Positions 7,253-61,989 of a stretch of DNA of 64,000 nucleotides are shown here, piece by piece. Source of the stretch: Mobula birostris (Eukaryota); the NCBI RefSeq assembly GCF_030028105.1, contig NC_092374.1, forward strand, positions 176,972,057 to 177,036,056. Direction: 5' to 3'. A program made the position numbers and the translations under genes. A model generated the notes under the pieces. That model did not search any database. It had not been told where the DNA came from and saw only the letters and a program-made list of their open reading frames with translations. Numbering within the stretch: position 1 is the first letter of the stretch; every line of letters begins with the position of its first letter.

Positions 7253-7501
7253 GCTCACACAGCTTGATGTATTACTACTTCCAATCCATCAGCATTCCTG
7301 AAATGCCAGCTTTCTTCAGGATTGGGATGCTCGATGACTTGCAGATAAACTACTACGACAGCACACTCCATGAAGTAGGAGTCAAGTACCAGTGGATCAC
7401 AGATGGCTTACCGATCGACTACTGGAAAAAACAGAAAGAAATAACCGATCAGCTTCATGAGCTCCTCTCGATATATCTGAACCCACTCTCCTCATTGATT
7501 A
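7253..7501 (+). CDS. Gene A exon: MHC class I alpha1 domain
   Basis: Polypyrimidine tract + AG at 7251-7252; donor A|GTGAGT at 7502. Encodes GSHSLMYYYFQSISIPEMPAFFRIGMLDDLQINYYDSTLHEVGVKYQWITDGLPIDYWKKQKEITDQLHELLSIYLNPLSSLI (inside ORF 7123..7515). Confidence 0.9.
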
Positions 7502-10500
7502 GTGAGTGTCTTTGATCTGCACTACCCTTTGAGTATCACAGTAACTTGCATATTGCCAATACCTTGATCTTCTATTAGATCCGATTCTGCTGTATCAAGT
7601 TTAAAGCCCTTCACTCTTTCAAATCTCTCAAATCTCCATTCTGCTCTCTACCTTCCTTAACTCCAATTACAAGAATTCCACCCTAATCAACTGGGTAAGT
7701 TCTGACCCTTCAAAATAAACTGATTATCCAGTCCTCATTCCCCACGGACCTCTTCAGAGAACTAGTGAAAATCAAACCCACTGTCCATCCAGGCTATGTC
7801 TGGCTCAAACCCTAATCCTAAGCCTACTCCCCAACTCCAGACTTGGGGATGCTTCAGTCTAGGATGGTTGGAACTAAGGCATCCATGGTTCTTATCTAGT
7901 CACCTGCCACAATGATGCTTTCCAGATCTAATTCGGTGCAGGGACTCCGTGCATTAGAACATAGAACACTACAACACAGGAACAGGCTCTTTGGCCCACA
8001 ATGTTCTGTTGAACTAATTATGTTAATAATCAAATGCCAAACTAATCTCATCCTTTCTGCCTATACAATGTCCATGTCCTGCTCCCCTAAGCTTCTTGAA
8101 CACCCTCTTTGTAGCTGCTACTACCACAACCCCTGGAAGCACAATTTAGGAACCCGCCATTCTGCAAAAGACTTACCCTGCACATCTCCATTGAACATAT
8201 CCCCTTTTCCATGCCCTCTTGTATTAGACATTTCAACAGAGGGAAAAATGATGCCAGCTGTCAACTTTAAAACAGAGAAAACAGCCCAAGTTGGTCAAAT
8301 CTCTTGTTATTGCACATGCTGTCCAATCCAGGCAGCATCTGGTAAGCATCTTCTGCACCTTCTCCAAAGCCTCACCGTCACAGAGTGACCAGAACTGCTG
8401 TGTTGCACACTCTGTGCTTATTGACACTGAATACAAACACGTTGCTTTCACAATTCTCCGCCGTAACTCTCTGCAGTGGACGTGGTTCAGCGCAGACTGT
8501 ACAGCGCAGTCTCTCACTGTGAGCCCCTGCTCCGACCCACATGTTGACAGAGTACTTCAATGTGCCCCCTGCTTTGTATGTAGAGTACTGTGCACTGCAC
8601 AGTGTTTCAACGTGATCTCTGTACTGTGCACTCCGCATAAGTTCAAGCTCAAGTTCATTTCTGAACATAGGCTGATATACACAGGGTACAAATGCCATAA
8701 AATTACTGTCTTACAGCAGCAGCATGGTATATTACAGGACATGTTAGCATGGAGTCAATTTTAAATAAATATGTACAACCTGCACATGTACAAAGTAGTA
8801 GTAGTCGTAGCAGTAGTAGTAGTAGTAGTCGTAGTTCTAGTAGTAGTAATCATACTTTATTGATCCCGGGGGAAATTGGTTAATTGGAAATTGGAAAAAG
8901 GTATACAACAAAATAAATGTAACAATATCTGTGCAAGATTAAGAGCGAAGAATATAATCTAGGGTCTCGTTAAGGCTTTTCTGGTTGGTTAAAGAACCTG
9001 GTGGTATTGGGCATGGAGCTCTTGTTGGAGCCTGGGGTGTTGGTCCTTAGGCCTCTGTCCCTCCTTCCTAGTGGTAGCATCAAGAAGAGAGTATGTCCTG
9101 GATGATAGGGAGGGTGTGGCTCCTGATGATGGATGTTGTCTTTTTGGGAAATTGCCTTCCGCAGATGTCCTCAAAGATGGGGAGAGCTGTACCTGTGATG
9201 GGCCTGGTTGAGCCCAGCACCCCCGCAGCCTTTTGTCTTTCAGAGCTTTGGAGTTTACCTACCAGCTGTGATGTAACCAATCCGAATGCTTTTCACTGCA
9301 CGTTTGAAAATGTTGTCATTCTTTGATGACAAATTGAATCTCTTTAAACTTTCCCCTCCCACCTTGCTGTGTAGACAGTTGCTCACATTGATTACTGATT
9401 CCACCAGACCTTGTGATCTGTGCCACACACTGACAAATGTTCTATATAGTACACTTCACCCCAAGCTCTTGGCCTTAACTGTACACAGTCGCTCGCCGTG
9501 ACCCACCACTTTGTGCACCTCTTAGTCACGTAGCATTTACGTATTTACCAGACCATTATCTAGTATTGGAAGCTTCAGCCATTAATGTTAATTAATCTGT
9601 TGGTAATTTACAGGCATCAGCTACATACAGGCATGCTGGGGCTGCACACAATCTGGAGATACGGTCAACGCGATTCTAAAAATCAACTTCCCGGATATCG
9701 GAGAGTTGAGCTGTGATTTGAACACATTGAAATGCACTGGCACTGGTTTCCTAGCAATGTTAAATAATCACTTGAGCCAACTCAGTTTCACTGACATGAC
9801 TGCATTGAAGAGTAACTGCACTTGGTATTTGCAAAGGGCTGTTCAGCTTGGAAAAGAAGCATTGGAAAGGCAAGGCAAGTGGAACATCCTGCGATGGTGA
9901 AGGAACTCCCAATTCAGCAACATAAAGGATACCCCAGTCTGAGACGATTATGGGGCTCTGAGACCGAGATGGTGTGGGCTGTCATGATTCAGGATACTGA
10001 AGGATTTGATGATCTAACAAATTTATGGTGTTCCCAATCTGGGACAGAGAAGGATCTCCAGATCTGGATAGTAAGGAAGCTTCCAATCAGAGATGCAGAG
10101 GGATCTCCTCATACGGGAAAGAGAGAGAGCTCCCAAAACAAAATGGTTAGGGGTTTCCCAATCTGCAGTAATGAGGGATCTCCTAATTTGAAACAATGAG
10201 TTGGTTGGAGTGTACGGCCTACAGGCCTGGAGGTGGACTGTGAGCCCATGATTGGCTCCATTGCTTCTCTCTGACTGAGGCGTTGAGCAAGGTTGAAGTG
10301 GACGAGGCCAAGTGCGGAAGCCAGGCTGGTGTTTGGCACCATCTGCCGCGTTTGCCTGGTATTGCTCTCCCTTTTACTAGCTGCTGTTGGAGGAAAGTGC
10401 AGGAGGCTTGGGTTCCACATTGCAGGGATTGATCGGTGAGGCTCGTGGTTGTGACTCTTTTTGGGGGACTTTAGGGTTCATGTATTTCTGGATTCTGGTT

Positions 10501-13500
10501 ACCCTTTGTTTGCTGTTTCTAAGTGGTTTGATCAGCGTGCATCAGTGCGCACTGGGCACTTCAGCAAAGACTGATTCTGCAGCCTGCATTTGGCTAGTGG
10601 CAAGGCACTGAACTAAACTGAGTACATCTAGACTTGATAAAACCATAAGATATAGAAGCAGAATGGGGCCATTTGGCCCATTGAGTCTGCTCCGCCATTT
10701 CATCATGCTGGTCCATTATCCCTCACAGCTCCAATGTCCTGCCTTCTCCCTGTATCCCTTCATGTCGTGACTATACAGAATCTATCAATCTCTGCTTTAA
10801 ATATACTAAAGATGTGGCCTCCACAGCTACCAAGTTGCCTGTAACAACAAATTCCACAGATGTACTGCTCTCTGGCTAAAGAAATACTTCCTGATCTCCA
10901 TCTTAAGAGGATGCTCCTCTACCCGGAGTGTCACAGAAATTTACTATTGCTGATTAAACAAGGACACAGACCCCAGTATTCAGTTTAATTACTTACTTAC
11001 ATGACCATGGAGAGCCCACTAAAAGGCTCTGCTAAAGTGAGCACAAGCATGGTCTTTTACACCTTAAAATACATGCAATTCAGCAGTTCTCAGGAGTCAG
11101 GAGTTCCTGCATAGACCTTATTGACAAGATTCAGGATGCTTCCATACCTTACACAAACTTAGATACTCTACACTCAGCCCCCTTCTTCCAGATCGTTAAC
11201 ATATATCGTAAACAGTTGCAGGCCCAGCACAGACTCCAGTGGCACATCACTCACCACTGACTGCCAACCAGGGAAACACCCAGGCATCCCAACTCTCTTC
11301 TTTCTATTAGTCAACCAATCCTCTATCCCTATTGTTCTATTTTGGTAAATTATCACCAAAGCCTCTGCTATAACTTCTGCCATTTCTTTCAGTACCCTGG
11401 GACTTATCTATCTTCCGGCCCACACGTTTGCTCAGCACTACCTCTTTAGTGATAGCTATTGTATCAGGTTCTTGCCTCCCATTGCATCCATAACATCTGT
11501 CTTTGGCATGTTAGACGTGTCCTCCACCTCCACTGTGAAGACCGACACAACGTAGATCTAAAGCCTCTGCCATTTCCTCATTCCCCAATATTAATTCCCC
11601 TTCTCGTCTTCCAAGGGACTGATGTTCACTTAAGCCACCCTTTTCTGCTTTATATAATTATAACTTTCACAATCTGTTTTTATATTTTGTACTAGTTTAT
11701 TTTCATAGTCTATCTTCCCTTCCTCCAATGCTCGTTCAGTGGTTCTATGTTGCTTTTTAATGTTTTCTCAATCTTGCATTTTCCCACTTCTCTTGGCAAA
11801 TTTGTACAAACGAGCTTTTAGTTTGATGCTTTCTTTCATTTCCCACCCTTGCTTACTTACTTGCTCCCCACTTTTAACTGGAACATACTTCTGTTGAACA
11901 CCGTGAAAAATCTCTTTTAAAGTCTTCCACTGTTCCTCAACCGTCCCGCCATGTGGTCTGTGTTCCCAGTCTACACAAGCCAAGTCCTCCCTCATCCCAT
12001 TGTAGTCTCCACTGTTTAGGCATACAGTAATACACTAGTTTTCTATCGAACTATTGCACCCTCCATTTGTACGAGAAACTCAATCACACTGTGATCACTC
12101 TTTCCAAGAGGATCCCTAACTACAAGATCACTTATTTTACCTGATCATTGCACAGGACCGGATCTAAGATTTGTAGGTTTAGTGACATGCTGTTCAAGAA
12201 AGCCATCATGGATGCATTCTATGAAATCCTCCTTAAGACTGCCTTCATCAACTTGATTCACCCAATCTATACCCAAGTTAAAGTCCCCCACGATAACCTC
12301 TGTTCCATTCTTACATGCCACAGATATTTGTCTGTTGATTGCCTGTGCCACCATAATGTTATAATTCAGTGGTCGATAGACAACTTCTACCAGTGATTTT
12401 TTCCCTTTTCTATTCCTGATCTCTACCCAGATGGATTCAAAATTCTGCTCATTAGATCTTATATCGTCTTTCACGATCACCCTGATCTCATCCTTAATTA
12501 AGACCGCTAACCCACCTCCCTTACATTCTTGTCTATCCTTCCATATTACTTGATATTCTTGGATATTCACTTCCCAATCCTCTCCACCCTGCAACCACAA
12601 TTCTGTAATGCCCTTGAAATCATACATCTTTGTAGTGATTTGTGCCAAAAGTTCACTGACCTTATTTTGAATACTACGGGCATTCAGATAAAGTGCCATT
12701 TCACTCATTGTGCTTTTAAAATCTTGTAATCTTTTTCTCTTTTGCACTTGTCTTTTCTTTACTCCACCCTTACTTTTCTCTTTTTTATCTTTTGATTTTT
12801 CATTATCTTTTTCCACAGTTTTCTCTTTTACTTTATCTATACATTTCTAATCTGTTGAACGCATTTCCCCTACTAAACCCATCCCCTACAATTTAGTTTA
12901 AAGCCCTATGCACAGACCTGGTTATGCGATTCACGAGCATCCAGGTCCCATCACAGTTCAGCTGGAGCCTGTCCCATTGGTACAGCTCCCTCCTTCCCCA
13001 ACATTGGTGCCAATTTCCTATGAAATCAAGCCTACTCCTCCCACACCAATCCTTCAGCCATGCATATAACTCTCTAATCTTCTAAACCCCATGCCAGTTT
13101 GCTCATGGCTCAGTAGTAATCCAGAGATTACCACCTTTTCTGTTCTGCTTTTTAATTTGGTCCCTAGTTGCTCAAATTCACTCAGTAGAACCTCTCTCCT
13201 TGTTCTACCTATGTCACAACTTGTCAAAGGCCTTCTGAAAGTCCAAGTACACAACATCCACTGATTCTCCTTTGTCTATCCAGCTTGTTATTTTTTCAAA
13301 GAATTCCAACATGCCGACTACGTCCTATTTTATCATGTGCCTCCAAGTACCCCAAAATCCCATGTTGAACAATCAACTCCAAACAACTGAGGTCAGACGA
13401 AATGGCCTATGATTTCCTTGCTTCTGTGTCTCTCCCTGCTTGAAGACTGGAGAGATATTTGCAATTTTCCAATATTCCAGAACCATTCCAGAATCTAAAG

Positions 13501-16500
13501 ATTCTTGAAAGATTATCACTAATGCCTCCATAATCTTTTCAGCCACCTCTTGCAGAATCTTAGCAGGTACACCATCTGTCCAGGTGACCTAAAGACCCTT
13601 CATTTTCCCAAGAAACATCTGTCTAGTAATGGCAACTTAACACACACCTGCTCCCCTGACACTCTCAAGCTTCCAGCATACTGCTAGTGCCTTCCTCATT
13701 TCATCCACTATTTCGTTGCCCCCGTTACTACATCTCCAGCATCATTTTACAGCAGTCCGAAATCCAATCTCACCTCTCTTTGACACTTCATCTATCCGTA
13801 CAAACTTTTTGCATCCTCTTTATTATTGGCTAGCTTACTCTCATATTCCATCTTATCCTTCTTAATGATTTTTTCAGTTGCCTTCTGCTGGGTTTTAAAA
13901 GTTTCCCAATTCTCTAACTTCCCACTAATTTTTGCTCCATTATATGCCATCTCTTTGGCTTTTATGTTGGGTTTGACTTCTCGTTAGCCACCCACCTTGT
14001 GTCATCTCACCTTTAGAATACATCTTCCTCTATTGGTTGTACATACCCTGCGCCTTCTGAATTGCTTCCAGAAACTCCATCCATTTATGTTCTGCCACCA
14101 TCCCTTTCAGTGTTATTTTCAAATCAATTCTGGCCAGCTCCTCTCTCATGCCTCTGTAATTATCTTTACTCCACTGTAATCCTGATACATCTGACTTTAG
14201 CTCTCCTTCTCAAATTGCATGGTGAATTCTATTATATTATGATCACTTACCCCTAAGAATACCTTTATCTTAAGCTCTCTAAACAATTCTGGTTCATTGC
14301 ACAACACTCAATCCAGAATAGCTGATACCCCAGTGGACTCAACCATGAGCTGCTTTAAAAAGCCATCCCGCAAGCATTATAGTAATTCCACTTCTTGGGA
14401 TCCAACACAAAACTGATTTTTCCAATCTACCTGCATATTTAAATTCCCCACGACTATTGTAACATTACCCATTTGGCATGCATTTTCTATCTCCCATTGT
14501 AATTTGTAGACCACATCCTTACTACAGTTTAGGGGTCTGTATATAACTCACATCAGTGTCTTTTTACCCTTGAAGTTCCTTAGCTCTACCCACAATGATT
14601 CAATATCCTCTGACCCTACATCACCTTTCTAATAATTTGATTTCATTTTTTACCAACAGAGCAATGCCTCCACATCTCCCTACCCTTTTGATACAATGTG
14701 TATCCTCAAATGCAAATACAAACAAAATCATAAATGCCAGTCTGTAATTGTGCTACAAGTTCATCAACCTTATTCTGTATACTGCACACATTCAAATATA
14801 ACATCTTTAGTCCGGTATTCACCATTTTTGATTTTGTCCACTTTTTACATTGCAACTCATCCTGTTGATTACAATTGTGCTCTATCATCAGCCTCTCCTT
14901 GCTAGGAGTCCCATTACACACTGCCTCCATTTGTAAACCAACTACCTCATCCTCAGCACTATCACTCAGGCTCCTATCCCCATGTCAAATTAGTTTAATC
15001 CCTCCTGAACAACTCTAGCAAACCTGCATGCAAGGATATTGTGCCCCCTTGGGTTCAGGTGTAACCTGTCCCTTTTGTACAGGCCATACCCAGAAGAGAA
15101 CCCCTGCCCTCTCCACTAATTCGTTGGCCACACATACACCTGCCAAATCATACTATTCTTACCCTCACTGGCACGTGGCACGGGCAGAAATCCAGTGATT
15201 ACTACACTGGGGTCCTGTTTTACAGCTTTCTACACAGCTCCCTCAAATCTCTCTTCAGGACCTCCTCAACTTATCAACCCATCTCATTGGTGCCAAGATG
15301 CACCAAGATTTCTGACTGCTCACCCTCCCTCCTGAAAATGCAATGGACCTGATCCGAGACATCCGTGATCCAGGCAACTGGGAGGCAACATACCACCTGG
15401 GTGTCTCCATCGTGCCCACAGAATCTTGTCTCTGTTCTTCTGCCTATGGAATCTCCTAACAACACTGCAGTCTTCTTCACCTCTCTGCTCTTCTGAGCCA
15501 CAGCATCAGATTCAGTGCCAGAGAGGAGGTCACTGTGGTTACCCCCGGTAGGTTGTCCCCCTCAACAGTATCTAAAGTGGTACATTTATATTGAGGGGTA
15601 TGACCACAGGTGTACTCTGCACTGGCTGAGCATCTCCCCTCCTTCTCCTGACAGTCACCTATTTACCAATCTCCTGCAACCTACGGTGACTACTTCCCTG
15701 TAGCTCCTATCTATCACTTCCTCTTTCTCCCATATGAAGCTAAGGTCAGTGAGCTGCAGCTCCAGTTCCTTAACACATTCTCTGAGGAGCCGCAGCTTGA
15801 CGAACCTGGTGCAGATGTGTTTATCCGAGAGACTGGATGTCTCCCAGAATACTCACATCTCACACACAGTATGAGACACTGCCCCTGGAGTCATTCTCAC
15901 TACACTATGATGCCCTAACAGATAAGGAATGGACAATTAAGAACAAAAATACCCCTGCTTGGATGTTTGATATTCTCTGTGTTGCTAGCTCACTTTTTGC
16001 TGTTTGTTCAATCTGTTCTCTCTCTGCATGTTGGGTGTTTGATATTTTCTTTGAACGAGTTCCTTGGTGCCTCTTTGTTCCTTTGCTGCATCAGAGGATA
16101 AACCTCAGAGTTGTATTTTGTATAAACAATTTGGAAATTAATCTACTTTGAATCTTTGAGTGAGGGCGCTCCCAAATGGAGACATTGACTGATCTCCCGG
16201 TCTGGGGCAGTGAGGGACCTTCTGATCACCGCTGCTGTGCTGAGGTCATTCTCCATCTTGCAGTTTGAGGATGATCTAAATTTGGGATATTGCATGACAG
16301 TTGGACTGGGAACAGTGCCTGTGACCTTGATATGGACCTGTCCGATGAATGAACGTATTCTCTGTCTGTAGTCTGCATGAGCTTAGGCTGGGGAGGCTGA
16401 TTTGAGATTAGATGGTGAGTGTAATAGTGAGGCAGATCAGGTTCTGAGGCAGTGAAGGATGTGAGAGTAATCCCAACATTGAACACTGTAACTTCAGTCT

Positions 16501-19253
16501 GTAACGATAAGGTAACATCAGCCTGTGTTGAGGTGGTGACATAATTTTTCATTCTTCCCCAGTTACTCCAGAGGTTCAGGTGTTGACAAGGAGGCCAACA
16601 GCTACTGAAGGCGAGAGTCTCTCGTGCATCATCAGTCCCTTCTACCCTCGTGCTATCAACGCCACTTGGCTGAAGAATGGGCAGGTTGTCTCTGAGGGCT
16701 ACAAGGTGACGGTGCTACCAAACTACAATGATACATACTGGATGGAACTAGTCATTGAGCTGCAGGGCAACGACCCAAACATCTGTACTTGTCATGTCGA
16801 ATACAGCAGCCTGCCAAAGGCCCTGATGGTGAAGGGAGGTAGGTCATCGTACTGTACAGAATTTGCTTCATTCTGCCTGTGGTGGCTCATGGACTCATGC
16901 AGCAGAGAAGGAGGCTCTTCAGCCTGTCTGATTCATGCAAACCCTCTAGTTCTGAAAAACACTTGGCCCGTCCCCTTCGTTAACTTGATGATTCAACTGC
17001 TCATCTAGGAACGTCTTGAAAATTATGACGGTTTCTGCCTCCACTATCTCCTCAGGCAGTCTATTCCCAACTCCAACACCCCCTTGATGAAAGTATGCTT
17101 CTGTAGATTCCCTATAAACCTCTTAGTCATTATCTTAAACCTACCTCGAGTTATAGGCACCTTTATCATGGGGAAGGGTTTACTACTGTTCAGGCAAACA
17201 CATGAAGTGAAAGCATAAACTGCAGCAAGTAAAACCTGTAGCACTCTTCAGAATCAGAATCAGGTTTATTGTTGCTGGCATCTGTTGTGAAATTTGTTAA
17301 CTTAGCAGCAGCAGAACAATGCAATGCATGATAATATAGAAAAAATATAAAACAAGTAAGTAAATCAACTACAGTAATTATATATATGTATATTGAACAG
17401 ATTTTTAAGTAGTGCAAAAACAGAAATAATATATATTTTAAAAAAATCTTCCAACATTTTCTTTGTATTTCCTATCTACACCCCTAATAATTCTGTATAA
17501 CTCCATCAGGTCCACCCTCAGTCTCCTCCCATCTAAAGAAAACAAAACCAGCGTATCCATTCTCTCTTCCCATTTCATCTGAGCCACATTCCGGCGAATC
17601 TCCTCTGCACTCTGTCCAATGCAATCACATCTCTCCTCTGCTCTGGTGACCAGAACTGTAAACAATACTCAGAACGTAGCCTCACTGATGTTTTATAAAG
17701 CTGTACCATAATTTCCATGCCCTTGTATTCTATGCACTGATAATTGGCATCTCATACACTTCCTTCACCACCCTATTTACCTCTTTGAAAGACCTAATCA
17801 AGAATCTCCACCATAAAGCTGCACCATAAGTTCCCTTCTCTTGAATTCTGTGCCTTGATCAATGAAATCCAGCATCCTGTAGGCTATCTTCACCACCTTG
17901 TGCTCTACTTTGAACGACTTGCTCAAGTAGCCCCACTCCTTTTCACACACCTCTGAAAATTTCTTAATTCCAAGAACATATCCCATTTCCATTTTGGAAG
18001 TTATTATTTACCGTGCTCTTTTATCACTCGAATTAAATCTGTTCCTTCTGCTCACCAGATGTTACAGAAGCAGTTGAGCTGTTGGTCAAAGAAATATAGT
18101 AAGAACTCAACAGAAAGAACAACTAAGAAGCAATTGGGACTGTGGGGAAGACCTGACTGTCAAGTGGTCACTGTCTGGCTGTTGGGTGTTTGATTGTCAT
18201 AGATTCGTAGAATAATGCAGCAGAGAAATAGACCCTTCAGCCCAACACGCCTTTGTCAATCAAGATTTGCATTCAAAGAAGTCCCATTTATCCTGGCCCA
18301 TATATCCCTAAACCCTTTAGACTCATGTACTGGTGGATGTATCTTTTAAAAGATGGTAACTTGTCTGCCTCAACCACTTCATCTGGCACCCATAAATTGA
18401 CCACCATGTTGCCATTCAGGTTCCTGTTACATTTTTTCTCTCTTAACTTAAACCTATACCATCAGGGGCCTAGAAAAATTATTGTGCACTCTCTCTATGC
18501 CCCTCAAAATTTTATATACCTCTCTCTATAACTCAGCTCCCTACACTCCAGCGAAAATAATCCCAGCCTAAATTGTCTCTCCTTATTTCTCAAGTATTCC
18601 ATTCCTGGCACCATCCTTGTGAATCTCCTCTGCATCCTTTCCATCCTAATGACATCCTTCCTTCCTCAAAACACTTTCCATTCTCTTATCCTCCAAAATA
18701 TAAGATACTACCCACCCAGGACTACCCTCCCCCGCACCACCCCCCCCCCCCCGCCCCCACCCCTCCGCTTCTCCCAGCTCCCCAGCTCCCATCAGGCACA
18801 GATACAAAAGCCTGAAAGCGTGTACTACTATGATCAATGAACTCTTCTGTCTTTCTCCTGTGAGAAAATTGAGTGGTCCCCAAACATAGTAAGATAGGCA
18901 TCTGACCTCACAATCTAACTTTTAATGGTCTTGCACCTTATTGCCAGCTAGCACCACACATCCTCTGTAAAATTAATACATTACTCTGCATTCTGTTATT
19001 GTTTTCCCTTGTACAACCTTAATATCCTGATTTAGTGATTTGTATGGACAGAATGCAAAACATGTATTTCCACTGTACCTGGTAACTGGTGACAATAATA
19101 AAATAATTTATACATTTACCGATCTTTACTTGGTGGACAGGAGTTGGTGAGCCCCATGGTGCAGGTCCTATGTTGGGGCTGATGACTGTGTTTGCGATAA
19201 TCTCTGGAGTGATGTAGAGGTGCAGCAAGGAGAGAACCAAGGCATCACTGGAG
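7253..19253 (+). CDS. Non-classical MHC class I-like heavy chain gene A (spliced alpha1-alpha2-alpha3-hydrophobic C-terminus; leader exon not found)
   Basis: Four open exons (249, 261, 276, 113 nt), all joined in phase 1, with AG acceptors and GT/GC donors. The translation has class I hallmarks: GSHSL.Y start, W51/W60 equivalents, Q96, GC101...C164, GKEALER end of alpha2, and an Ig C1 set domain (C..FYP..I...W...C.V). A full paralog lies on the minus strand. Confidence 0.9.
7950..8390 (-). mobile_element. CR1 LINE 3' fragment
   Basis: GAACATAGAAC tail; ORF 8233..8517 contains ALEKVQKMLTRC..LD. Confidence 0.7.
8794..8848. repeat. (GTA)n microsatellite, imperfect
   Basis: Direct reading; abuts the 3' tail of a minus-strand LINE. 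Confidence 0.9.
8850..9330 (-). mobile_element. Rex1/Babar-like LINE 3' fragment
   Basis: Tail CTTTATTGATCCCGGGGGAAATT; degenerate LLPLGRRDRGLRT..PRLQ motif. Confidence 0.65.
9614..9874 (+). CDS. Gene A exon: MHC class I alpha2 domain (GC donor)
   Basis: Acceptor ttacAG at 9612-9613. Encodes GISYIQACWGCTQSGDTVNAILKINFPDIGELSCDLNTLKCTGTGFLAMLNNHLSQLSFTDMTALKSNCTWYLQRAVQLGKEALERQ. Ends CAAG|GCAAGT at 9875. Confidence 0.88.
10201..16160. mobile_element. Nested insertion stack in the gene A alpha2-alpha3 intron: non-autonomous retroelement (10201-10635 + 15945-16160) split by several minus-strand CR1 pieces (10640-15940)
   Basis: CR1 ORFs 11174..11383, 11768..11995, 12145..12816 (LYLNARSIQNK), 13054..13257, 14706..14930 and 15274..15501 (LLGDS...HLGTNE esterase). 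The host element ends in a CTTTGAATCTTTGA tail at 16146-16160. Confidence 0.75.
16563..16838 (+). CDS. Gene A exon: alpha3 Ig C1-set domain
   Basis: Acceptor ttccccAG at 16561-16562. Encodes VTPEVQVLTRRPTATEGESLSCIISPFYPRAINATWLKNGQVVSEGYKVTVLPNYNDTYWMELVIELQGNDPNICTCHVEYSSLPKALMVKG. Donor G|GTAGGT at 16839. Confidence 0.92.
17245..18000 (-). mobile_element. LINE 3' tail (17245-17435) plus old CR1 fragment (17440-18000) shared with gene B intron (38250-39100)
   Basis: GAATCAGAATCAGGTTTATT tail. The stretch GAATACAAG...GGAAATTATGGTACAGCTTTA occurs in the same relative orientation in both paralogs. Confidence 0.6.
19141..19253 (+). CDS. Gene A terminal coding exon: linker + hydrophobic C-terminus, stop TAG at 19215-19217
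   Basis: Acceptor AG at 19139-19140. Encodes GVGEPHGAGPMLGLMTVFAIISGVM*. Donor GAG|GTGGGT at 19254. Same 113-nt size and same stop position as the gene B exon. Confidence 0.8.
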
Positions 19254-19343
19254 GTGGGTAAACATACAGATGCCTTTGTTAAACCTGCTTGCTGTGACAG
19301 TATTAGACTGTACATTCAATCTCCTCTCTTTTCTCCTTTGCAG

Positions 19344-20520: not shown

Positions 20521-21179
20521 TGAGGGCAGACCTGATAGAGATTTATATAATCCTGAGAGACAAAAAGAGATGGGATAGTCAGTTTCTTCCACAGACTAGA
20601 AATGTCAGATATTAAATTCACCAATCACACAGTAAAAAAAAAACTTACTTCTGACATCCCTCTATAGTTTCTTCTAATCATCGTCAAATTATTCCCCCTC
20701 ATATTGGCCATTTCCACCATGGGAAAACTCTGGCTATCCACTCAATCTATTTTTCTTATGCTTCTTACAGTCTTTATATCTCTGTCAAGTCACCTCTCAT
20801 CCTCCTTTGCTCCAAAGAGAAAAGCCCTAGCTCACTGAACATATCTTCATAAGACATACTCACTAATCCAGGCAGCATCCTGGTTATTCTCCACTGCACC
20901 CTATCTAAAGCTTCTACATCCTTCCTATAATGAAGTGGCCGAAAATGAACACAATAATGAGATTATAATCCATGATCAGCACAGCCCCTCCAAAGATGCA
21001 GACATGTGATCCCGCAGCGTTTTCCCAAGACTGAGTCTCTAAACATGCACCCTCCAGGGGCACAATGCTCCCAAGCATTGCACCTTCGACACTATAGCAG
21101 CCCCTCAGCAATGGTCCTTCTTCAGATAATCCACTTCTTAAAGTGAATCAGAACCTTAGTTACAACAGTGGAGAGTGGC

Positions 21180-24706: not shown

Positions 24707-24765
24707 TTACAAACGCCCTTATGGACTTACAAACGCCTTATGGACTTACAAACCGACATATGGAC
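24707..24765. repeat. 3 x ~19-20 bp tandem (TTACAAACGCCTTATGGAC)
   Basis: Units at 24707, 24727 and 24746. Confidence 0.8.
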
Positions 24766-26545: not shown

Positions 26546-26619
26546 TGCCGGTGAATCACGGTGACATTTTGTGGGCATGTACAATACTTCTAAATATACC
26601 TCTTTTGAATTATTCTCAC

Positions 26620-33830: not shown

Positions 33831-33839
33831 GGGTGTTTT

Positions 33840-35530: not shown

Positions 35531-35984
35531 TTTCAAATTGGTTTGGCACAATATTGTGAGTCAAATAGCCTGTTCCTGTGTTGTACATTTCAATATTCCA
35601 TCTCCCTCCAGATATAATATGCTCCAACTACGACCACCCTCTGCCTTCTTTGGGCAAGCCAATTCCGAATCCATGCAGACAGGTTTCTATGGATCCCATG
35701 CCTCATCATGTCTGAATGTCTACCAAGATATTTCTGGATGAGAAGACCATGACCCGTCACAGGAAGAATGTGCAAACTCCACACGGACCATGCTGGAGAT
35801 CAGGATTGAACCCGTGTCGCTGGAGTAGAGAGGCTTTGCTCTACTTGCTGTGCGATAGTGCCTTCAGATAACAAGCTGAGAGTCCTCCTCGACCCAACCC
35901 ATGATATCCACAAGGCAATAACAAAGGCTGACACTTCTGTCATAATAGCAAATAGTACACATGATCCAGGGAAATAACCGCATT

Positions 35985-36350
35985 AGACCTTAGAACATAA
36001 AACATTACAGTACTGCAATGGGCCCTAAAGCCTATAATGACTGTGCTGTTCATGATGCCTAATTAAACTAAACATCTGTCTGCGCATGGTCCCTATCCCT
36101 TCGTATCCACAGGTCCATGTATCTATCTAAATGCCTTTTAATGACCAGTATGATGTCTGTTCGCACCATCACCTCTGGTAATGCATTCCAGGCACCTACC
36201 AGACTGAGTATATTAAAAATGAACAACTCCTTTAAACTAAAGCTATGGTCTCTAATATTTGACATTTCTAGGCTGGGAAAAAGACTGACTACCCCCTCTC
36301 TGGTGCTGCTGAGGATTATATAAATGCCCTTCAGGCTTACCATGCCTCCA
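35985..36350 (-). mobile_element. CR1 3' fragment
   Basis: ORF 36068..36343 (AWNALPE..V...IKRHLDRYMD); TAGAACATA tail. Confidence 0.7.
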
Positions 36351-36369
36351 ACACTCCAAAGAACACGGA

Positions 36370-36967
36370 TCTGTCCAATCCATTAGCAGGGATTGTGGGC
36401 ATATTTACACCACTCTATGAACCTCAGATTAATTTTTAACTCTACATCAACCCAAATTACACCAATATCCAGGGGTTTCTGTTCCTATTTTAAAGAAAAT
36501 GTTGGACCCTCCCAATCTCATATTAAGGGAAGAATTCTTAGGTATCCGGAGTTCACAACAGGAATTCACTCTTCCATTCAGGTCTTTCCAAATGCCCAGT
36601 AAATCTTTCACTGCTTTATCCCACCAACTTGCCTTGGCAGTAATTCCTCACACCAATGGTCTGATATACAGTATTGAATTGGCGTTAGGGTTGGGAAGAG
36701 CTATTCAGGTCAAGTAGGGCTTTACGAATGAGAAGTTGAAACTTCAACACACCACAACACTGAAACCTGATCGCTGAGTGAGATGTAAGAAAAAGTTATA
36801 ACATTGCAAAACAGACGAGCTGTAAAGTGGCAGAAGATTCAGCTAAGCATTTCCCGCACTGGAGCCAACACTAAGCTTGCTTAGGTGTTGAACCATTAAT
36901 CACAAAACCAGGCAGAGGATCCAGCTTGTGTTCAGAGCTGAGCTTGAGATTTGGGCCAAACACCCAC
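36370..36967 (-). other. Gene B downstream (3' UTR) exon; 3' end not determined
   Basis: Acceptor tttttcttttgcAG (36969-36968) after an 85-nt intron. Homologous to gene A 19344-19441 plus 20087-20520. Confidence 0.55.
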
Positions 36968-37052
36968 CTGCAAAAGAAAAATGAGAAGAGATTGGTTGAG
37001 CAATACTGTGACGGCAAGCAGGATTAGTGAAAGGACCTGCGTGTTTACCCAC

Positions 37053-37165
37053 CTGCACTAAAGTCTTGACTCTCTCCTTGCTGCTCCTCTACACTACTTT
37101 AATCATCATCGTAAGTGTCGCCATCAGCCCCAGCAAAGGACCTGCACCACGAGGCTCCCCGGCTC
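37053..37165 (-). CDS. Gene B terminal coding exon: linker + hydrophobic C-terminus, stop TAG at 37091-37089
   Basis: Acceptor AG (37167-37166). Encodes GAGEPRGAGPLLGLMATLTMMIKVV*. Donor CAG|GTGGGT (37052). Confidence 0.8.
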
Positions 37166-40100
37166 CTACTCACCAAGTAAAGATTGGTAAATTGGTAATA
37201 TTTTAATATTGTTGTCACATGTACTGAGGTACACTGAAAAATCTTTGTACTGCATGCCATCCACAGATAATTGCATTACAATTGCACATTGAGATAATAC
37301 AAGGGGCAAAAATAACAGAATGCAAAGCAACTTGTAACAGTTACAGAGGAAGTAGAGAGCAGGCACACAATAAGGAGCAAGGGCCACAATATGGTTGATC
37401 GTGACATCAAAGGTTAAACGTGCTGTACTATGGAACTCTACAATACTGTTATAACAGCAAAATAGAAGCTGTCCTTGATCATCAGTGTGTGCTTTCAGGC
37501 TTTCGTACCTTCTGCTCAGCAGAAGATGGGGGAAGAAGAAAGAATGTATGGTGCGGGTGATGTCTTATTCACTGGAGCTTAGGAGAATGGGGTGATCTTA
37601 TGCATATTAACAAAGGAAGGAAGTCATTAAACTGGAAAAGGTGTACAAAATATTTGCAAGAATGTTGCCAAGAAAGGTACACTTGAATTAGAAGAGGAGG
37701 TAGCATAGCTTGCCATTATTTTCCCTTGAATGTAAGAGCTTGAGGTATATAGAATAACGTATAAAATCATAAAGACCATAGAGAGGATGAACGCACAATC
37801 TTTTTCCCAGGATTTGGGCATCAGGAACTTTAGGACAAAGGTTTAAGGTGATTAGGGAAAAATATAATAGAAACCTGAGGGCCAACATTCTCAGGCAGAA
37901 GTTGTCAGCACAGGGAAGGAGATGCAAGTGAAAGTGGTTTTGGCAGGTACATTAACATCATTTAAAAAAAAAAATCACTGGAACCAGTAGCTAGACAGGA
38001 AATGTTTGGCAGTATATGGGCCATAGTAGGAATCTTGGTTGGCATGGACCAGTTGTGCAGATTGGCCTGTTTTTGTTCCGAGAGGGTCTATGAATTCTCT
38101 GAATATCAGTCATTTCTCAGCCAGGCAGTGGCCATTGAACAGTCAGGCCTTGACCCACAGGCCCAATTGCTTCTCAGTTGTTTCTTTCCTTGAGTGTCTA
38201 TTATGTTTCTTTGGCCCACAACTCATAATTGCTTCTTATGACTGAACACAAACAAGAGAAAATCTGAAGATACTGTAATCTTGCAAATAATAACTTTCAG
38301 CAAGGACATGGGACATGTTTTTTGAAGAAAGAAACGTTCAGAGGCATGTAAGAGAAGAATGGACTACTTGATCAGCTCTTTCAAAGTGATAGACAGGATG
38401 GTAAAGAAAGCCTACAGGATTTATTAATCAGGGCATGAAATATAATTTGTTTTATTTAGAGATACTGTACAGACCAGCCCCTGCTGGACCAATGCACTGC
38501 ACCACCCAACAACCTCCCTATTTAACACCAGCCTCATCATAGAACAATTTACAATGACGAATTAACCCACTAGCTGGTACATCCATGGACTAAGGGAGGA
38601 AACCGGAGCACCCAGAGGATATCCAGGCAGTTCATGGAGAGAACGTACAAACTCTTACAGACGGCATTGGAACTGAACTCTGAACTACAGTACCATAGTG
38701 ACCTCTGAAGCCTGGTACAGTTTTACTGGGGAGATACATCATCAGGTCATTCAAAGAGGTAGGTAAAGTAATGAACAAAGTGTACAGGATACGAGTGTTC
38801 ATTAATATGGGCACAGAATACAAGACCAAGGAAATTATGGTACAGCTTTACAAAACATTACCTAGGCTACATCCCAAGTACTTGATACATTTTCAGTCAC
38901 CAGTCCAGAGGAACAATTTGATTGCACGGGACAGAGTACACAGGAGATTCACCAGGATTTTATTGGGATGCAGTGTTTCAGCGAAGAAGCTGGGTTTGAT
39001 TTCCCTGAACGGGAGGACACTGAGAGAGGAGCTGATGGCATTATACAAAATTGTTAGGGGCATTGAAAGGAAAAATGTACAAAATGCTGAAAGAACAAAG
39101 CTTTTTTTAACTGCAGTAGTTTGTATACTGCTCCCACTTAATTTCTTTTATAAAACAGCAGCAAACTTTTCCCCATAGGAGAGTTGCTTATTACTGTAGA
39201 GGTAGGTTTAAGGCAAGGATTAAGAGATTTAGAGAGAATAGAGAGAAGATTTTTTTTTAAATTAATGGGTTAGTGGGAGATGGGAATGCTCTGCCTAAGG
39301 GGCTGGTATAGGCAGACATTCTCACAGCGTTTAAAAATTATTTTGATATCTACAAAGTATAAGAAGCTGCAGAGAATTGTTGACACAGTCAGCTCCATCA
39401 TGGGCAGAAACCACCCCACCACCGAAGACATCTTCAAGCGGTAGCGCTTCAAGAAGGTGGCATCCAGTACTCAGGACCCTTGCCATCAGGGACATGCCCT
39501 CTTCTCCTTTAATGTAATCAGGGAAAAGATACAGGACTCACAAAGAAGCCACTAATCAGAAATATCTTCTTTTCTTCTATCATTCATGAATAGTCATGAA
39601 CCCATGAACACAACCTCATTATTCCAATTTTTGCACTAATTACTTCATTTTATAATTTATGTTATTTTTCAGTCATGGAGCACTACAGCACAGAAGTAGT
39701 CCATTTGGCCCATCTAGTCCGTCAAAATGCCATTCTGCTTATTCCCTTCAATCCACATCTGGCTCTAGACCTACATACTCTTCTCATTCACGCACCTTGG
39801 GCTGGCAGTCTTCCTCCAGCTAGTAAATCTCACCTATAGCTATAGTATCATAATTTCATGAGTTGGACCATGTTCTAAGCTCATACACCTTTTATGTCTT
39901 TGCACTGTACTGCTGTTGCAAAAGAACAATCTTCATATCATAATTCTGACAAGCACTTGAATCATCGAGGAAGAGAAGGCCGAAGTACAGACCAAGTACT
40001 GGTTGGAATAGACTGGCACCAGAGGGTCAGCATGTATGTGGTGAGCCAAATGGCTTCCTTCAATACTGTATGAATTTATGAACCACCACAACAGAATGAA

Positions 40101-43100
40101 GCAAATTCTATACCGTACGATGACCTACCTCCCTGCACCATCAGTGCCCCCGGCAGGCTGCTGTGCTTGACATGACAGGTATAGATGTTCATATCATTAT
40201 CCTGCAGCTCAATGACTAGTTCCATCCAGTATGTAGCATTGTAGTTTGGTAGCACGGTCACCTCGTAGCCCTTGGAGACAACCAGTCCATTCTTCAGCCA
40301 AGTGGCGTTGATAGCACGGGGGTAGAAGGGAGTGATGATGCATGACAGACTCTCGCCCTCAGTAGCTGTTGGCCTCTTTTTCAACACCTGAACCTCTGGA
40401 GCAACTAGGGAAGAATGAAGAATTAACGTCACTAAGTCAACACAAACTTATATTATCTTACCATTACAAATGGAAGTTACAGTGTCCAAGAGTGGGATTC
40501 TTACTCTTTACTGCCTCAAACCAGGACCTACCTCACCATTAATCACTATCTTGCCCGAATTCATCTCCTCAGCTCAAGGCCATGCAGACTATAGCCAGCA
40601 GTAATTTTCATTCATCTGACAGGCCTAGATCAAGGTTATAGCCACCATTACCAATCTTTATGTCACCCATAGTCCCAAGTCAATATTACCTCATATTCCA
40701 AGATTGATCATGCCATCATCATCCCAAATTAAGTTTAGTTTACCAGCCTTAATTGGGAGATCCTTCAAAATTCCTGATCAAGAGATGCCCTCAATGTCCT
40801 GGATTGGGAGATCTGTTACTGTGTCTAAATAGAAGTTCCAACACAATCCCTGACTTGGACATCATTAGTCACCTTCAACTGAGGTATCCTTCACCCCAGA
40901 TAAGGACATCGCTCACCATTCAGAATTGGGAGATCCCCCAGTGTCGCAGATTGGGACCTCTCTCATCTTCTTAGACCAGAACACTGCTCACCAAATGACA
41001 CTTTGATGGTGAGTCCCCTCATTCTCCTGAATCAAAAGCTCCCTCACAAACTCAGAATCAGGCTGCCCCCGTCCATTTGTGTCAAGACACCCCTGAATAT
41101 CTCGGATCAGGAGTCCATCAATTGTCTGAAGCAGGAGTTCCCTCACAGAGCTTACAGTATGTAATCAGATGTTCTACTTGCCTTGCCTTTCAAGCTCCTC
41201 TCTGCCAAGCTGAAGACCTTTCTGCAAATACTGAATGCAGGTACTGTTCATCACATAAATTTCAGGAATATCAGCAATATTAACTTGCTGAAGATAATCA
41301 TTGACCAACATCAGGACACCAGTGGTAATACACTTCCCGGTAGTAAAGTCACAAATGAGCTCTCCCAAATCTTGGCAGCCAATCTTGAGGAAGGTTTTGA
41401 ATGTATTTGCAGACTGCGTACAGCCCAGAAGCCCCTGGATGTATCTGATGCCTGGAAGGCACCAACAGGTTAATCTGTGTTAGTGGCTGAATATTCGAAA
41501 TCTTCAACCATTCCCACCTGCATAATGTCCTGCTAAACATGTAAATACCATGTGCACTGTCTTGTGCAACACTTTCTCAGTAGGGTGAAGTATATGACAT
41601 GTCCCCTTTGACCCTCAGTCATGTTTATTGATGTACAATATAGGCATCACAGCTTGGTATGGCATCAGGCCTGCTCATGATCACAAGAAGAAGAAGAAGA
41701 AGAAGAAGAAGAAGAAGAAGAAGAAGAAAGCCCTTAACTCCGAGTGGAATCATTGGGACACCGTCATGATGGAGTTTTTTTAGCCTGCTTTCTTATTTTT
41801 AAAGAGGCCGAGTTGCTAGCTCGACGCTCAACGCAGCACGAATGGAAAGCGTGCAAGGGAGCCGACTGGATTCGGTCTCGGGAGCCTTTGCTCAGAAGTT
41901 CAGCGCTGATGCCACTAGGCCACCGGCTGGCTCATGATCACAAGAAACTGCAAAAAGTTATGGATACAGATCAGCACACACAGCCCCCCCCACCCCGTAC
42001 ATTCTATCTACATTTCTCGCTGCTTCAGTAAATCAGACAACAAAATCAAAGACCCCATCCACGCACAAGTTTTAAATTGGGGTAGGGAAAATTATAAGGG
42101 CAATAGGCAGGTTCTAAGAAGTGTTAATTGAGAACACTTTTTCTCTGGCAAATCTACAATAGACATGCGGAGTGTGTCTAAATATCAATTTCTAGAGTAC
42201 AGGAGAAGTATGTTCTTGGTTAGAAAGAAGGACGGGGATGAAAAGAAAAGGGAACCTTGGATGTCCAGAATGGTAATGAGCTTAGACAAGAAGAAAAAAG
42301 AGAAGTTATATAAAGCTTTGGAAGTCAAATCAAACAAAGCATATGAGGAGTATAAACAAGCCAGAAAAGAATGAAAGAAGGTAATTAGGAAAGCCAGGAG
42401 GGGCCATGAAAAATCCTTGACAAGTAGCATTAAGGTGAATCCCACGGCATTCTACACATACGTCACAGGATAAAAGGATGGGAAATACTTACTTGGATGC
42501 TAAGAATGTGAATGAGGTACTTAATGAGTACAGTGCCTCAGTATTTACCGGAGAAAAGGATATGGAGGACTAGGAGATCAGTACTGAGTGTAAAATACAT
42601 TAGGGCATTTAGAGGTTAAGGAGAAAACAGTGTTGGCCGTCCTAAATAGGAGTTCCCACACTATGTGTGACTTGGACATCATTAGGAGTATTAAAGTGGA
42701 TAAGGCCCCAGGGTTTGATGGGATTTACCCCAGATTCTTGTAGGAGGCAAGAGGTGAGATTTCTAGGCCCTTGACCAGTACCTTTGTGTCCTATCTAGCC
42801 ACAGGCAAGGTTGTAGAGGACTGGTGAGTGGTTAATGTTGTACTGCTGTTTAAGATGGGAACAAGGGAAAATCCTGGGAACTACAGACTGGTGAGTCTCA
42901 CATCAGTTGTCGGGAAATTACTGAAGAGAATTCTTAGGGACGGGATATATGAGCATTTGAAAATCCATGGCCTAATGAGAGAGCCAGCATGGCTTTGTGT
43001 GTGGCAAGGTGTGTCTTACCAACCTAACTGAGTTTTCTTGGATAAGCTGAGAGAGAGATTGATGAAGGTAGGGCAGTGGAGGATTTCAGTAAGGCATTTA

Positions 43101-45764
43101 AAAAAGTCCCTCATGGGAGGCTAATCCAGAAGATTAAGATCTATGGTTTCCATGGCAAATTGGCTGTTTGGATTCAGAACTGGCTTGCACAGAGAAGACA
43201 GAGGGTGGTGGTTTAAGGGAACTATTTGAGCTTGAGGTCTGTGATTAGTAGAGTTGCACAGGGATTTGTGCTAGGACCTCTGCTGCTTGTGACGTATATA
43301 AATGACCAGGCTGAAAATGTAGATGGATGGGTTGGTAAATTTGCAGTTGATACCAAGATTGGTGGAATTGTGGATAGTGTAGATGACTGGCAAAGGTTAC
43401 AGCATTATATAGATCAGTTGCAGAAAAAATAGCAGTTGGAGTTTAACCCAGATAAATGTGAGGTGTTGGACATTGTAGGGTAAATGCAAGGATACAGTAC
43501 TGTTAAGGGCAATGTCCTTAACAGTGTTGCTGAGCAGAGAGCTGTTGGGACCAAGTTCATAGCTCCTTGAAAGTGGCTACGTAGGTCAATAAAGTGGTTA
43601 AAATGGAATGCTTGCTTTTACTAATTGAAGCACTGAGTTCAAAAGTCAGGAGGTTATGTTACAATTTAATAAAATTCTGGTTCGGTCACATCTGGGGTAT
43701 TGTCTATGGATCTGGCCAACCCACTAGAGGAAGGATGTTGAGGCTTTGGAGAGGATGATGAAGAGGTTCACCAGGATGCTGCCTGGTTTAGAGGGCACGT
43801 GCTATCACACGAGGCTGGATAAACATGGGTTTCCCTGGAGCATCAGAGGCCAATGGGTGATCTGATAGAGGTTAAAGAGGGGTGTGATTAGAGAGCATCT
43901 GTTTCCCAGGGTTGAAATGTCTAACACCAGAGGACATGCATAGAAGGTGAGAGGTGTTAAGTTCAAGAGGGATCTGAGGGGCAATTCTTTTCTTTACTCA
44001 GAGTCATGGATGCCTAGTATAGTGGTAGAGGCAAATACATTAAAGGATTTCAAGAGACATTTCGATAGGCACATTGATATAAGGAGGATGGATGTATATG
44101 GATGTGGTGTAGGTAGGACGGATTAGCGTTTGGGTGTTTTTGATTAGCTTTTTAGCCGGTTCAGCACAACACTGTTGTGCTCTTCTGTGTTCGATGGCAT
44201 TCTCTCTTCTTCCCCATCCCATAGGGCAGAAGATACAAAAGCCTGAAAACATATATCACCGGGGTCAAGGGCAGCTTTTATCCTGCTGTTATCAGTCTAT
44301 GTATAGTCCCCTGGTACAATAATATGAAATCCTGACCTCACAAACACCCATATTATGGTTTTACACCTTATGGTCTGTTTTCATTGCACTTTCTCTATGA
44401 CTGTAACAATTCATTCTCCATTCTGTTATTGCTTTCTCTTGCACCTCAATGTACTGTGGTAATGAAATGACATGTACAGATGGTGTGCAAAATAAAGTTG
44501 TTGTTCACTGGACCTTAGCAGATACGACAATAACAAATCAATTTACCAATTTACCATGAAGCACACAAAGCAATGGCAAAGAGCATGGGATCACAGTGTT
44601 CTGCATGCAGTGTGTGGTACACATGACAGGATCAGTAATGAACGTGAGCATGAGAGTGTGGCACAGTGGAATATTGTTGGTGGAGGGGGTGATCTGTACA
44701 GAGTGTATATCATTGCATGATATAATGCAGGGGTCATGATGAAGGACTGTGTACTGCATATCAGTGTGTGGAGAAGGTAGCACACCAACATCTTTGCTTA
44801 GAAGTCTAAGGAGATTCAGCATGTCATTGAAAACTCTGACAAATTTATAGAAATCACGTCCTAGTATTGAAACTCTCTCCCATTGAGGACATTTACCAGT
44901 GAAGGTGACATTCTTCAGCAGGGACAACCACCATCAGGGCCGTGTCCTCTTCCCCATGCTGCCATCAAGCATGAGTTCCAGTAGCCAGAAAACCCACACC
45001 TCAAGGTTTAGCACCTTTCCCTCCACTGCCATCAGGTTCTTGAACCAAGCTGAAAAACCCCAACATTACCTCTAATGATTTTTCTCTCAATATGCACAAG
45101 TATCATTATGTTTTTGTACACATGCAAATTACATGTAATATATTTGAATTTTACTTTATATTAACTTATGTTTGCTTGACCTGTGCAAAGCCAGAGAGGC
45201 AGTGGGTCTGATTCTCACTATTTCTTGGAGGAGATCAGTGTAGAGTGAGCAGTGGGTTCTCAGAAATAGATTCTCAGTGTGTTTTGAAGGGCAAAATTTC
45301 TCTTGCAAATGTGGGATACAGATGGAATGCTTTTAATTGAAGGTAAATATTTGTTACAGGATGTTGAGAGGGCATATAACCCTTGAAAGATTTGAAACCA
45401 AGGATAGGAATTTTAAAACTGATACAACTTAATTGGGTCCATTGAAAGGTCAACATGTTTTCAGTGTGTAAGTCACTGTGAGCCTCGAAGAAGAGTGGAG
45501 ATCAAAGACACGTACCAAGCATCGAGGCGAATGGAGTCAGATTAGGAGGAAGTAACTTTTTAATTGCGTCCGGGATCTCTTTCTGGTTTTTCCAGTCGTT
45601 AGCTGAAAAGCCGTCCATGATCCACTGTTGCTTGGCTTCTACCCTCTGGATGGTGCTGTCATAGTAGCATATCTGCAGGTCATCCAACATCCCAACCATG
45701 GAGATGTATGGCAGCTCAGGAATGTTTATTGAATGGAGGTAGAAATATGTCAAGCTGTGGGAGA
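37053..45764 (-). CDS. Non-classical MHC class I-like heavy chain gene B (paralog of gene A; leader exon not found)
   Basis: Four open exons (249, 270, 276, 113 nt) in phase 1 on the minus strand, with the same domain order, splice phases, GC donor and stop position as gene A. Confidence 0.9.
38480..38700 (-). mobile_element. tRNA-derived SINE (HE1/V-SINE-like) in gene B intron
   Basis: GGGAGGAAACCGGAGCACCC...GAGAACGTACAAACTC, the reverse complement of a typical fish/shark SINE body. Confidence 0.65.
40129..40404 (-). CDS. Gene B exon: alpha3 Ig C1-set domain
   Basis: Acceptor ttccctAG (40406-40405). Encodes VAPEVQVLKKRPTATEGESLSCIITPFYPRAINATWLKNGLVVSKGYEVTVLPNYNATYWMELVIELQDNDMNIYTCHVKHSSLPGALMVQG. 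Donor G|GTAGGT (40128). Confidence 0.92.
41182..41451 (-). CDS. Gene B exon: MHC class I alpha2 domain (GC donor)
   Basis: Acceptor ccttccAG (41453-41452). Encodes GIRYIQGLLGCTQSANTFKTFLKIGCQDLGELICDFTTGKCITTGVLMLVNDYLQQVNIADIPEIYVMNSTCIQYLQKGLQLGREELERQ. Ends CAAG|GCAAGT (41181). Confidence 0.88.
41690..41929 (-). mobile_element. tRNA-derived SINE with (TTC)n tail and 17-bp TSD, inserted in a Rex-like fragment (41560-42050)
   Basis: A box TGGCCTAGTGG and B-box-like GACCGAATCC on the minus strand. (AAG)14 at 41685-41726. TSD GCTCATGATCACAAGAA at 41673-41689 and 41930-41946. Confidence 0.85.
42070..44150 (+). mobile_element. CR1 LINE ORF2 remnant to 3' end
   Basis: ORFs 42165..42374, 42828..43031 (GNYRLVSLTSVVGKLL) and 43226..43432 (QGFVLGP, KFAVDTK). 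Confidence 0.88.
44560..45070 (+). mobile_element. Rex1/Babar-like fragment(s)
   Basis: HHQGRVLFPMLPSS..SSQKTHTSRF...AIRFLN-like C-terminal motif at 44925-45050. Confidence 0.5.
45516..45764 (-). CDS. Gene B exon: MHC class I alpha1 domain
   Basis: Acceptor ttttttcAG (45766-45765). Encodes VSHSLTYFYLHSINIPELPYISMVGMLDDLQICYYDSTIQRVEAKQQWIMDGFSANDWKNQKEIPDAIKKLLPPNLTPFASML. Donor G|GTACGT (45515). Confidence 0.9.
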
Positions 45765-61790: not shown

Positions 61791-61989
61791 GGTGACCGGT
61801 CCGACCAATCCATAAAATAATCTCAGCATCAAAACTGATGCAATTCCCAAATCCAGCCACACTATTTTACATTATAGTTACCTTGAGTGTTTCGACAGTT
61901 TGATTCAGATCCTGTCGTTAGTTTATTTCCAGAATTCTTACCTCAAGAGTTGATATGTCGTTGAAAATTTCTGCCACTATTTTGTCCAG

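Follow-up and report, generated by a model that had tools for sequence, protein, structure and literature searches.

Two probable UFA-lineage MHC class Ib genes in a 64-kb stretch of the giant manta ray genome

[quoted passage not shown] We assign both genes, with a probability of roughly 0.85, to UFA, a lineage of nonclassical MHC class I (class Ib) genes in cartilaginous fish, of which they would be intact paralogues. The genes are real, intact and already annotated, and they belong to a named lineage rather than to a new class of gene.

Assignment to the UFA lineage

A search of 1.8 billion representative proteins with an alpha1-profile hidden Markov model, together with follow-up searches, retrieved a family of full-length ray and shark proteins of ~310-320 residues. 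The best PDB match of each of the three domain profiles is 8gm8_A, with E values of 2.8e-18 for alpha1 (next match, 9ch4, 4e-10), 1.3e-13 for alpha2 (next match, chicken CD1 (3jvg), 0.053) and 2.9e-26 for alpha3 (next match, 6e-16). Entry 8GM8, released on 2024-11-27, bears the title "Crystal structure of shark nonclassical MHC class I, UFA" and its sequence is that of the nurse-shark protein P0185, while 9CH4 is "UGA". In blastp comparisons with P0185 the family scores 169-356 bits and the best outsider 133 bits. The gene 2 structure predicted from a 28-sequence family alignment (mean predicted local distance difference test score, pLDDT, 74) adopts the standard class I fold, with 8GM8 at the top of the structure search.

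In a maximum-likelihood (ML) tree (LG+C20, 40 sequences), both window genes and nurse-shark UFA lie within a single clade of 9 shark and 20 ray proteins (hereinafter designated the UFA clade) with 100/100 support, wherein each shark species is represented by one protein and the order of the shark proteins follows the species tree. Triakis UAA, bony-fish class I and a UGA-like skate protein (P0026, best PDB match 9CH4) fall outside the clade, and neither the best PDB match nor the tree places the window genes in UGA.

The name UFA is used in PMC10751288 and PMC12562908. The former calls the binding region of UFA CD1-like, and its supplement labels the genes "MHC-Ib" only, without lineage names; the latter describes UFA as single or low copy and states, as a personal communication, that structures and mass spectrometry of UFA and UGA indicate CD1d-like lipids. 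In the literature found, UFA figures only as "unpublished" or "personal communication" (PMC10751288, PMC12562908), besides the two PDB entries, and a literature search for 8GM8 or a primary UFA paper returned nothing relevant.

Gene structure

Comparison of 6.5-18 kb of the plus strand with 39-47 kb of the minus strand by blastn and tblastx revealed blocks common to both strands, and two complete, convergent (tail-to-tail) class I exon sets can be read directly from these conserved blocks (Table 1). A tblastn search over the window recovered both exon sets, and no class I exon apart from theirs. AG acceptors and phase 1 are found in every exon of both genes, the reading frames are open and the splice sites intact, and the donor after alpha2 reads GC/AAGT in gene 1 and gene 2 alike. 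An earlier note on this DNA, made from the letters of the sequence alone, had described two complete alpha1-alpha2-alpha3-terminal exon sets on opposite strands, open, in phase 1 and ~50% divergent in alpha1 and alpha2. Its coordinates and features are correct, and the protein identity between gene 1 and gene 2 measures 54% in alpha1, 49% in alpha2 and 84% in alpha3. Its characterization of the pair as spliced, divergent, nonclassical class I genes with short groove domains, an extra pair of cysteines, a GC donor and no cytoplasmic tail holds as well.

Table 1 Exons of the two class I genes in the window, and positions of GC donors in other genomes
Feature	Position	Strand	Remarks
Gene 1 alpha1 exon	7253-7501	+	249 nt, phase 1, AG acceptor, GT donor; 100% identical to XP_072113435.1 (P0156)
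Gene 1 alpha2 exon	9614-9874	+	261 nt; C101/C164 equivalents and extra C-x6-C pair; GC donor 9875-9876
Gene 1 alpha3 exon	16563-16838	+	276 nt; Ig C1-set, Pfam 4.9e-12; 8gm8 2.9e-26
Gene 1 terminal exon	19141-19217	+	connecting peptide and ~16-residue hydrophobic tail; TAG 19215-19217
Gene 2 leader exon	53365-53290	-	MESWNGPGLLLFTILSLCSVAGSQT; phase-1 donor CAG/GTAAGG; 7.5 kb upstream of alpha1
Gene 2 alpha1 exon	45764-45516	-	RNA contig joins 45515 to 41450
Gene 2 alpha2 exon	41451-41182	-	270 nt; GC donor 41181-41180
Gene 2 alpha3 exon	40404-40129	-	Ig C1-set, Pfam 2.6e-14
Gene 2 terminal exon	37165-37089	-	GAGEPRGAGPLLGLMATLTMMIKVV, then TAG 37091-37089
GC donor sites in other genomes	L001 ~16300, L002 ~17332, L003 ~28848, L004 ~19844

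The layout of leader, alpha1, alpha2, alpha3 and anchor, the phase-1 introns, the alpha2 cysteines and the C1-set alpha3 are those of an MHC class I heavy chain. In Pfam, the alpha3 exons match C1-set (5e-12 and 3e-14) and the alpha1 exons match MHC_I weakly (3e-6 and 1e-5; below the MHC_I cut-off exon by exon), and in the same exon-wise scan the alpha2 exon alone gives no match. C10 and C68 of alpha2, the equivalents of C101 and C164, are invariant in the alignment. The two exon sets are not a product of chance, because they have Pfam matches and because two RefSeq proteins, both of Mobula birostris, reproduce their spliced products without a mismatch: gene 1, read from its alpha1 exon to the end, shows 100% identity with XP_072113435.1 over residues 33-318, and gene 2, including its leader exon, encodes a 315-residue protein that is 100% identical to XP_072113434.1. 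The genes can therefore not be called "hidden", as they had been in the earlier note, since both are RefSeq models already. RefSeq names for the family vary and include CD1d-like, MR1-like, HFE, ZAG and RT1.

Leader exons had been overlooked in the earlier note. A scan for signal-peptide-like open reading frames (ORFs) with a phase-1 donor yielded one good candidate for gene 2 (53365-53290), which lies outside the range 7253-45764 covered by that note and has conserved counterparts in the orthologues of Hemitrygon, Hypanus and Pristis. The same scan found no leader for gene 1 in the window; the 32-residue leader of the RefSeq protein lies before the window.

Lineage-wide marks and membrane attachment

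Alignment with classical and UGA-like proteins shows that the whole UFA clade has lost six residues from the end of alpha1, and with them the usual N86 glycosylation site, and that it has an extra cysteine pair in alpha2 and a C-terminus that ends inside the membrane segment. The extra cysteines, whose equivalents in HLA-A2 we take to be L126 and W133 on neighbouring floor strands, are lost in some stingray copies. The GC donor after alpha2 also occurs in basking shark (Cetorhinus), sawfish (Pristis) and the gene 2-type orthologue of Hemitrygon, and has turned into GT in one gene 1-type copy of Hemitrygon (P0162). The window genes share the short alpha1, the extra cysteine pair, the tail-less C-terminus and the GC donor.

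In both genes a hydrophobic C-terminal segment of ~15-17 residues is followed directly by the stop codon, without a cytoplasmic tail. The protein ends in this segment and contains no cytoplasmic tyrosine-based endosomal sorting motif; endosomal sorting by a CD1-style tyrosine motif is ruled out because the C-terminus is tail-less. The C-terminus comprises a G-x-G of small residues, then ~7 polar spacer residues and ~15 hydrophobic ones at the end, without any basic residue, and as judged from this layout a glycosylphosphatidylinositol (GPI) anchor, or an otherwise bare membrane anchor, appears more likely than a normal transmembrane anchor. That the segment is instead a true tail-less transmembrane anchor, or that the protein is secreted, is the lesser but still a sizeable possibility. 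In the alignment the segment covers the first two thirds of the classical class I transmembrane region, but 15-17 hydrophobic residues without a basic stop-transfer sequence would be short for a stable anchor, and the succession of G-x-G, spacer and hydrophobic end would fit what is generally known of GPI signals.

Downstream of the stop codon, an open stretch of ~45 nt resembling the basic beginning of a cytoplasmic tail (RCSKERTKASLE at 19218-19262 (+) in gene 1 and RSSKERVKTLVQ at 37088-37045 (-) in gene 2) leads to a GT donor, and the sequence "tag-gg-agcagcaa" after the stop recurs in sawfish and Hemitrygon. The stretch looks like a relic of a lost cytoplasmic tail.

Splicing and transcripts

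Logan contigs from three RNA runs (X1-X3) were placed on 40000-45990, the gene 2 region. In each of the three runs one contig joins 45515 to 41450 (GT-AG, minus strand) and 41182 to 40404 (GC-AG), the latter intron having the ends CT..GC on the plus strand and thus GC-AG on the minus strand. These junctions are exactly the predicted alpha1-alpha2-alpha3 splices, GC-AG intron included. The contigs run 145-213 nt 5' of alpha1 onto sequence outside 40000-45990, consistent with a distant leader, and the alpha3 contigs leave at the predicted donor 40128/40129 and continue 405-1573 nt beyond. A word search for the leader exon in the RNA runs recovered only 2-3 of 16 sampled words, which is too weak to count. 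Relative to gene 2 the contigs differ in 13 codons, seven of which change the amino acid (residues 71, 175, 176, 179, 185, 239 and 270). The RNA contigs show that this type of gene is spliced as predicted, the gene 2 copy itself not being proven as their source.

Three 231-residue RefSeq isoforms of Hemitrygon and Hypanus (P0002, P0153 and P0170) join alpha1 directly to alpha3 and skip the alpha2 exon with its weak GC donor; they may reflect real alternative splicing or may be model artefacts.

Sublineages and selection in rays

The UFA family has at least six gene models in Mobula birostris, one of which fuses two units. In the ML tree, gene 2 groups with single orthologues of Hemitrygon and Hypanus (85% identity) in a sublineage that branches before the sawfish genes, and gene 1 falls in a five-member group specific to Mobula; each of the two genes stands for one of two old sublineages in rays. 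Between these, synonymous divergence amounts to 0.6-0.9 in alpha1, 1.5 in alpha2 and 0.27-0.30 in alpha3. Since the alpha3 value is close to that of manta-Hemitrygon orthologues (0.18-0.26), and it is also below the value against sawfish, it is probable that gene conversion in the ancestor of the myliobatiform rays homogenised alpha3 across the sublineages.

Across alpha1, alpha2 and alpha3, the ratio of nonsynonymous to synonymous divergence (dN/dS) between the two window genes falls in the range 0.23-0.34, and both genes are therefore under purifying selection. Between orthologues, dN/dS reaches ~0.75-0.8 in alpha1 versus 0.2-0.4 in alpha3. Divergence of ~50% in the groove under purifying selection suggests that gene 1 and gene 2 have different ligand ranges.

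Two sawfish (Pristis) members of UFA lie at 13.25-13.29 Mb on chromosome 34, 160-200 kb from B2M and BRD2, which places them within the cluster of class Ib genes reported by Verissimo et al. (2023).

Groove and proposed function

Of the eight residues with which classical class I binds peptide ends, one is kept in gene 2 (Y7) and two in gene 1 (Y7 and Y59), and the eight-residue set for peptide termini of classical (UAA) molecules is found in neither. Each gene encodes, after a signal peptide, a shortened alpha1, an alpha2 carrying C101-C164 and the extra cysteine pair, a conserved C1-set alpha3 and a hydrophobic end with no cytoplasmic tail. The heavy chain would be expected, from its conserved alpha3, to pair with beta2-microglobulin, and a putative GPI-type signal would attach it to the cell surface. 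By homology with nurse-shark UFA, a groove lacking six or seven of the eight peptide-end residues may bind hydrophobic or lipid ligands, which might be shown to innate-like T cells, as by CD1. We infer presentation of lipid or hydrophobic ligands because the peptide-end residues are lost and because lipids are reported for UFA (PMC10751288, PMC12562908).

A wider scenario, which we put forward tentatively and hold to be somewhat doubtful in its full form, is a ray radiation of at least 6-7 expressed UFA paralogues in two ancient sublineages, with ~50% divergent grooves under purifying selection and an alpha3 kept uniform by gene conversion, in which each isoform would present a different lipid class from a GPI-anchored platform, as a ray counterpart of mammalian CD1a-e. 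The expansion of UFA in myliobatiform rays may be the new element here.

Flanking sequence and repeats

A leader-like ORF at 45974-45915 (MRPILVVVV...), with a gene 1 counterpart at ~7059-7121, was rejected as a leader exon, the exon at 53365-53290 being preferred; it is out of phase with alpha1, and gene 1 has no usable donor there. The surrounding sequence is conserved between 45909-45983 (-) and 7023-7097 (+), comprising the leader-like ORF and ~127 nt before alpha1, with ~72-76% identity in DNA and ~44% in the ORF protein. This out-of-phase block could be the relic of an older, proximal leader exon or just a conserved intron end. A single further block is conserved upstream of both genes (3479-3795 versus 62538-62210); it is repeat-like and was discarded as an exon.

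No match to an interferon-stimulated response element (ISRE), kappaB or X-box was found over 635 nt upstream of the ATG of gene 2. Two copies of the Y-box-like motif ATTGG occur at 53391-53411 (-), at distances of 26 and 42 nt upstream of this ATG. They may lie inside the 5' untranslated region (UTR), as the RNA contigs suggest a 5' UTR of ~70-140 nt.

The exon sets had been described as buried in debris of transposable elements (TEs), which is borne out in part. The ORF at 61955-62563 (+) and the adjoining ORF at 62933-63421 (+) carry between them one GDSL-like lipase/esterase domain and one endonuclease domain, and the pair would fit a LINE, probably one of CR1/L2 type; four further repeat-like ORFs of the window have no Pfam match. 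Fragments resembling reverse transcriptase are numerous in the introns and in the 18-kb spacer between gene 1 and gene 2.

Discussion

Several points weigh against the reading of the two genes as intact, functional UFA paralogues. Identity to nurse-shark UFA is ~40%, and the ML tree sets the clade against UGA-like, UAA and bony-fish class I proteins, without named UBA, UDA and UEA references or CD1. The manta has at least six gene models, whereas UFA has been described as single or low copy (PMC12562908), copy number being a descriptive rather than a defining property. All seven amino-acid differences in the RNA contigs are those of P0171, a RefSeq model that fuses two units and lies at another place in the manta genome, so that transcription is seen for the gene type and not directly for this copy, and the RNA comparison covered the gene 2 region only. 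Ligand type, beta2-microglobulin pairing, GPI anchoring and T-cell recognition are inferred.

The transcript data leave some room for both copies being silent or decaying duplicates, with only close paralogues expressed. Contigs of three RNA runs contain the predicted junctions, but their variants fit P0171 better than gene 2, and TE insertions abound in this large family. We regard this alternative as improbable: neither gene has a break in its reading frame across the five exons, the splice sites are good, dN/dS is low (0.23-0.34) and both genes are RefSeq models. Logan contigs, moreover, collapse close variants, so that they are no guide to the absence of a copy.

A chondrichthyan class I lineage that is undescribed and separate from UAA-UGA, to which an alpha2 without a Pfam match, an alpha1 below the MHC_I cut-off and an identity of at most 44% to any non-ray protein might point, is already refuted by the identity of 8GM8 and by the ML tree, in that UFA is the best match in all domains, at least eight orders of magnitude ahead of the next, the 100/100 clade with shark UFA follows the species tree and the odd features recur in its shark members. 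The earlier note had raised such a lineage as a possibility, had said that strong nesting inside a described lineage with the same features would refute it, and had allowed for membership of a described lineage, UFA being among those it named; the tree shows precisely such nesting, with nurse-shark UFA (8GM8).

UFA has been cited in support of the view that lipid presentation of the CD1 kind dates back to the origin of jawed vertebrates. With manta and stingray genes assigned to UFA, an expansion of the lineage in rays is documented, and the lineage-wide marks (GC-AG intron, extra cysteines, and a tail-less, probably GPI-type anchor) offer a means of annotating UFA in further genomes. For work on ligands, the ray paralogues supply naturally occurring groove variants. 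Both the expansion in rays and the marks of the lineage add modestly to what is known and do not amount to a new gene class.

Among known systems, mouse Qa-2 and the ULBP/RAET1 proteins are GPI-anchored class I-like molecules. Like the manta genes they combine, as is generally known, a class I-like ectodomain with a short hydrophobic end and no cytoplasmic tail; unlike them they belong to unrelated lineages, and for the manta genes GPI anchoring is a prediction. Shark UGA (9CH4) is another CD1-like lineage within class Ib, present in sharks and rays, and gives the second-best alpha1 match (4e-10), but the UGA-like skate protein P0026 stands outside the UFA clade and keeps a full transmembrane region and cytoplasmic tail.

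Tetrapod CD1 resembles the manta genes in its class I fold, beta2-microglobulin-type alpha3, loss of peptide-end residues, lipid ligands (reported for UFA) and radiation into isoforms in some taxa, and NCBI calls several of the ray orthologues "CD1d-like". Orthology with CD1 is, however, not demonstrable (alpha2 profile versus chicken CD1, E = 0.05), and in contrast to CD1 the manta genes have neither a cytoplasmic tail nor a YxxZ endosomal motif, and UFA is MHC-linked in Pristis.

The closest counterpart is shark UFA. The manta genes differ from it in sequence (~40% identity) and in number, with at least six manta models in two sublineages compared with one gene per shark species, and some stingray copies are without the extra cysteine pair. 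They agree with nurse-shark UFA (8GM8) as their best match in three domains and as members of the same 100/100 clade, with the same short alpha1 and extra cysteine pair, and with the shark UFA orthologues in the GC donor and the tail-less C-terminus; for the Pristis members the position in the MHC class Ib cluster is shared as well.

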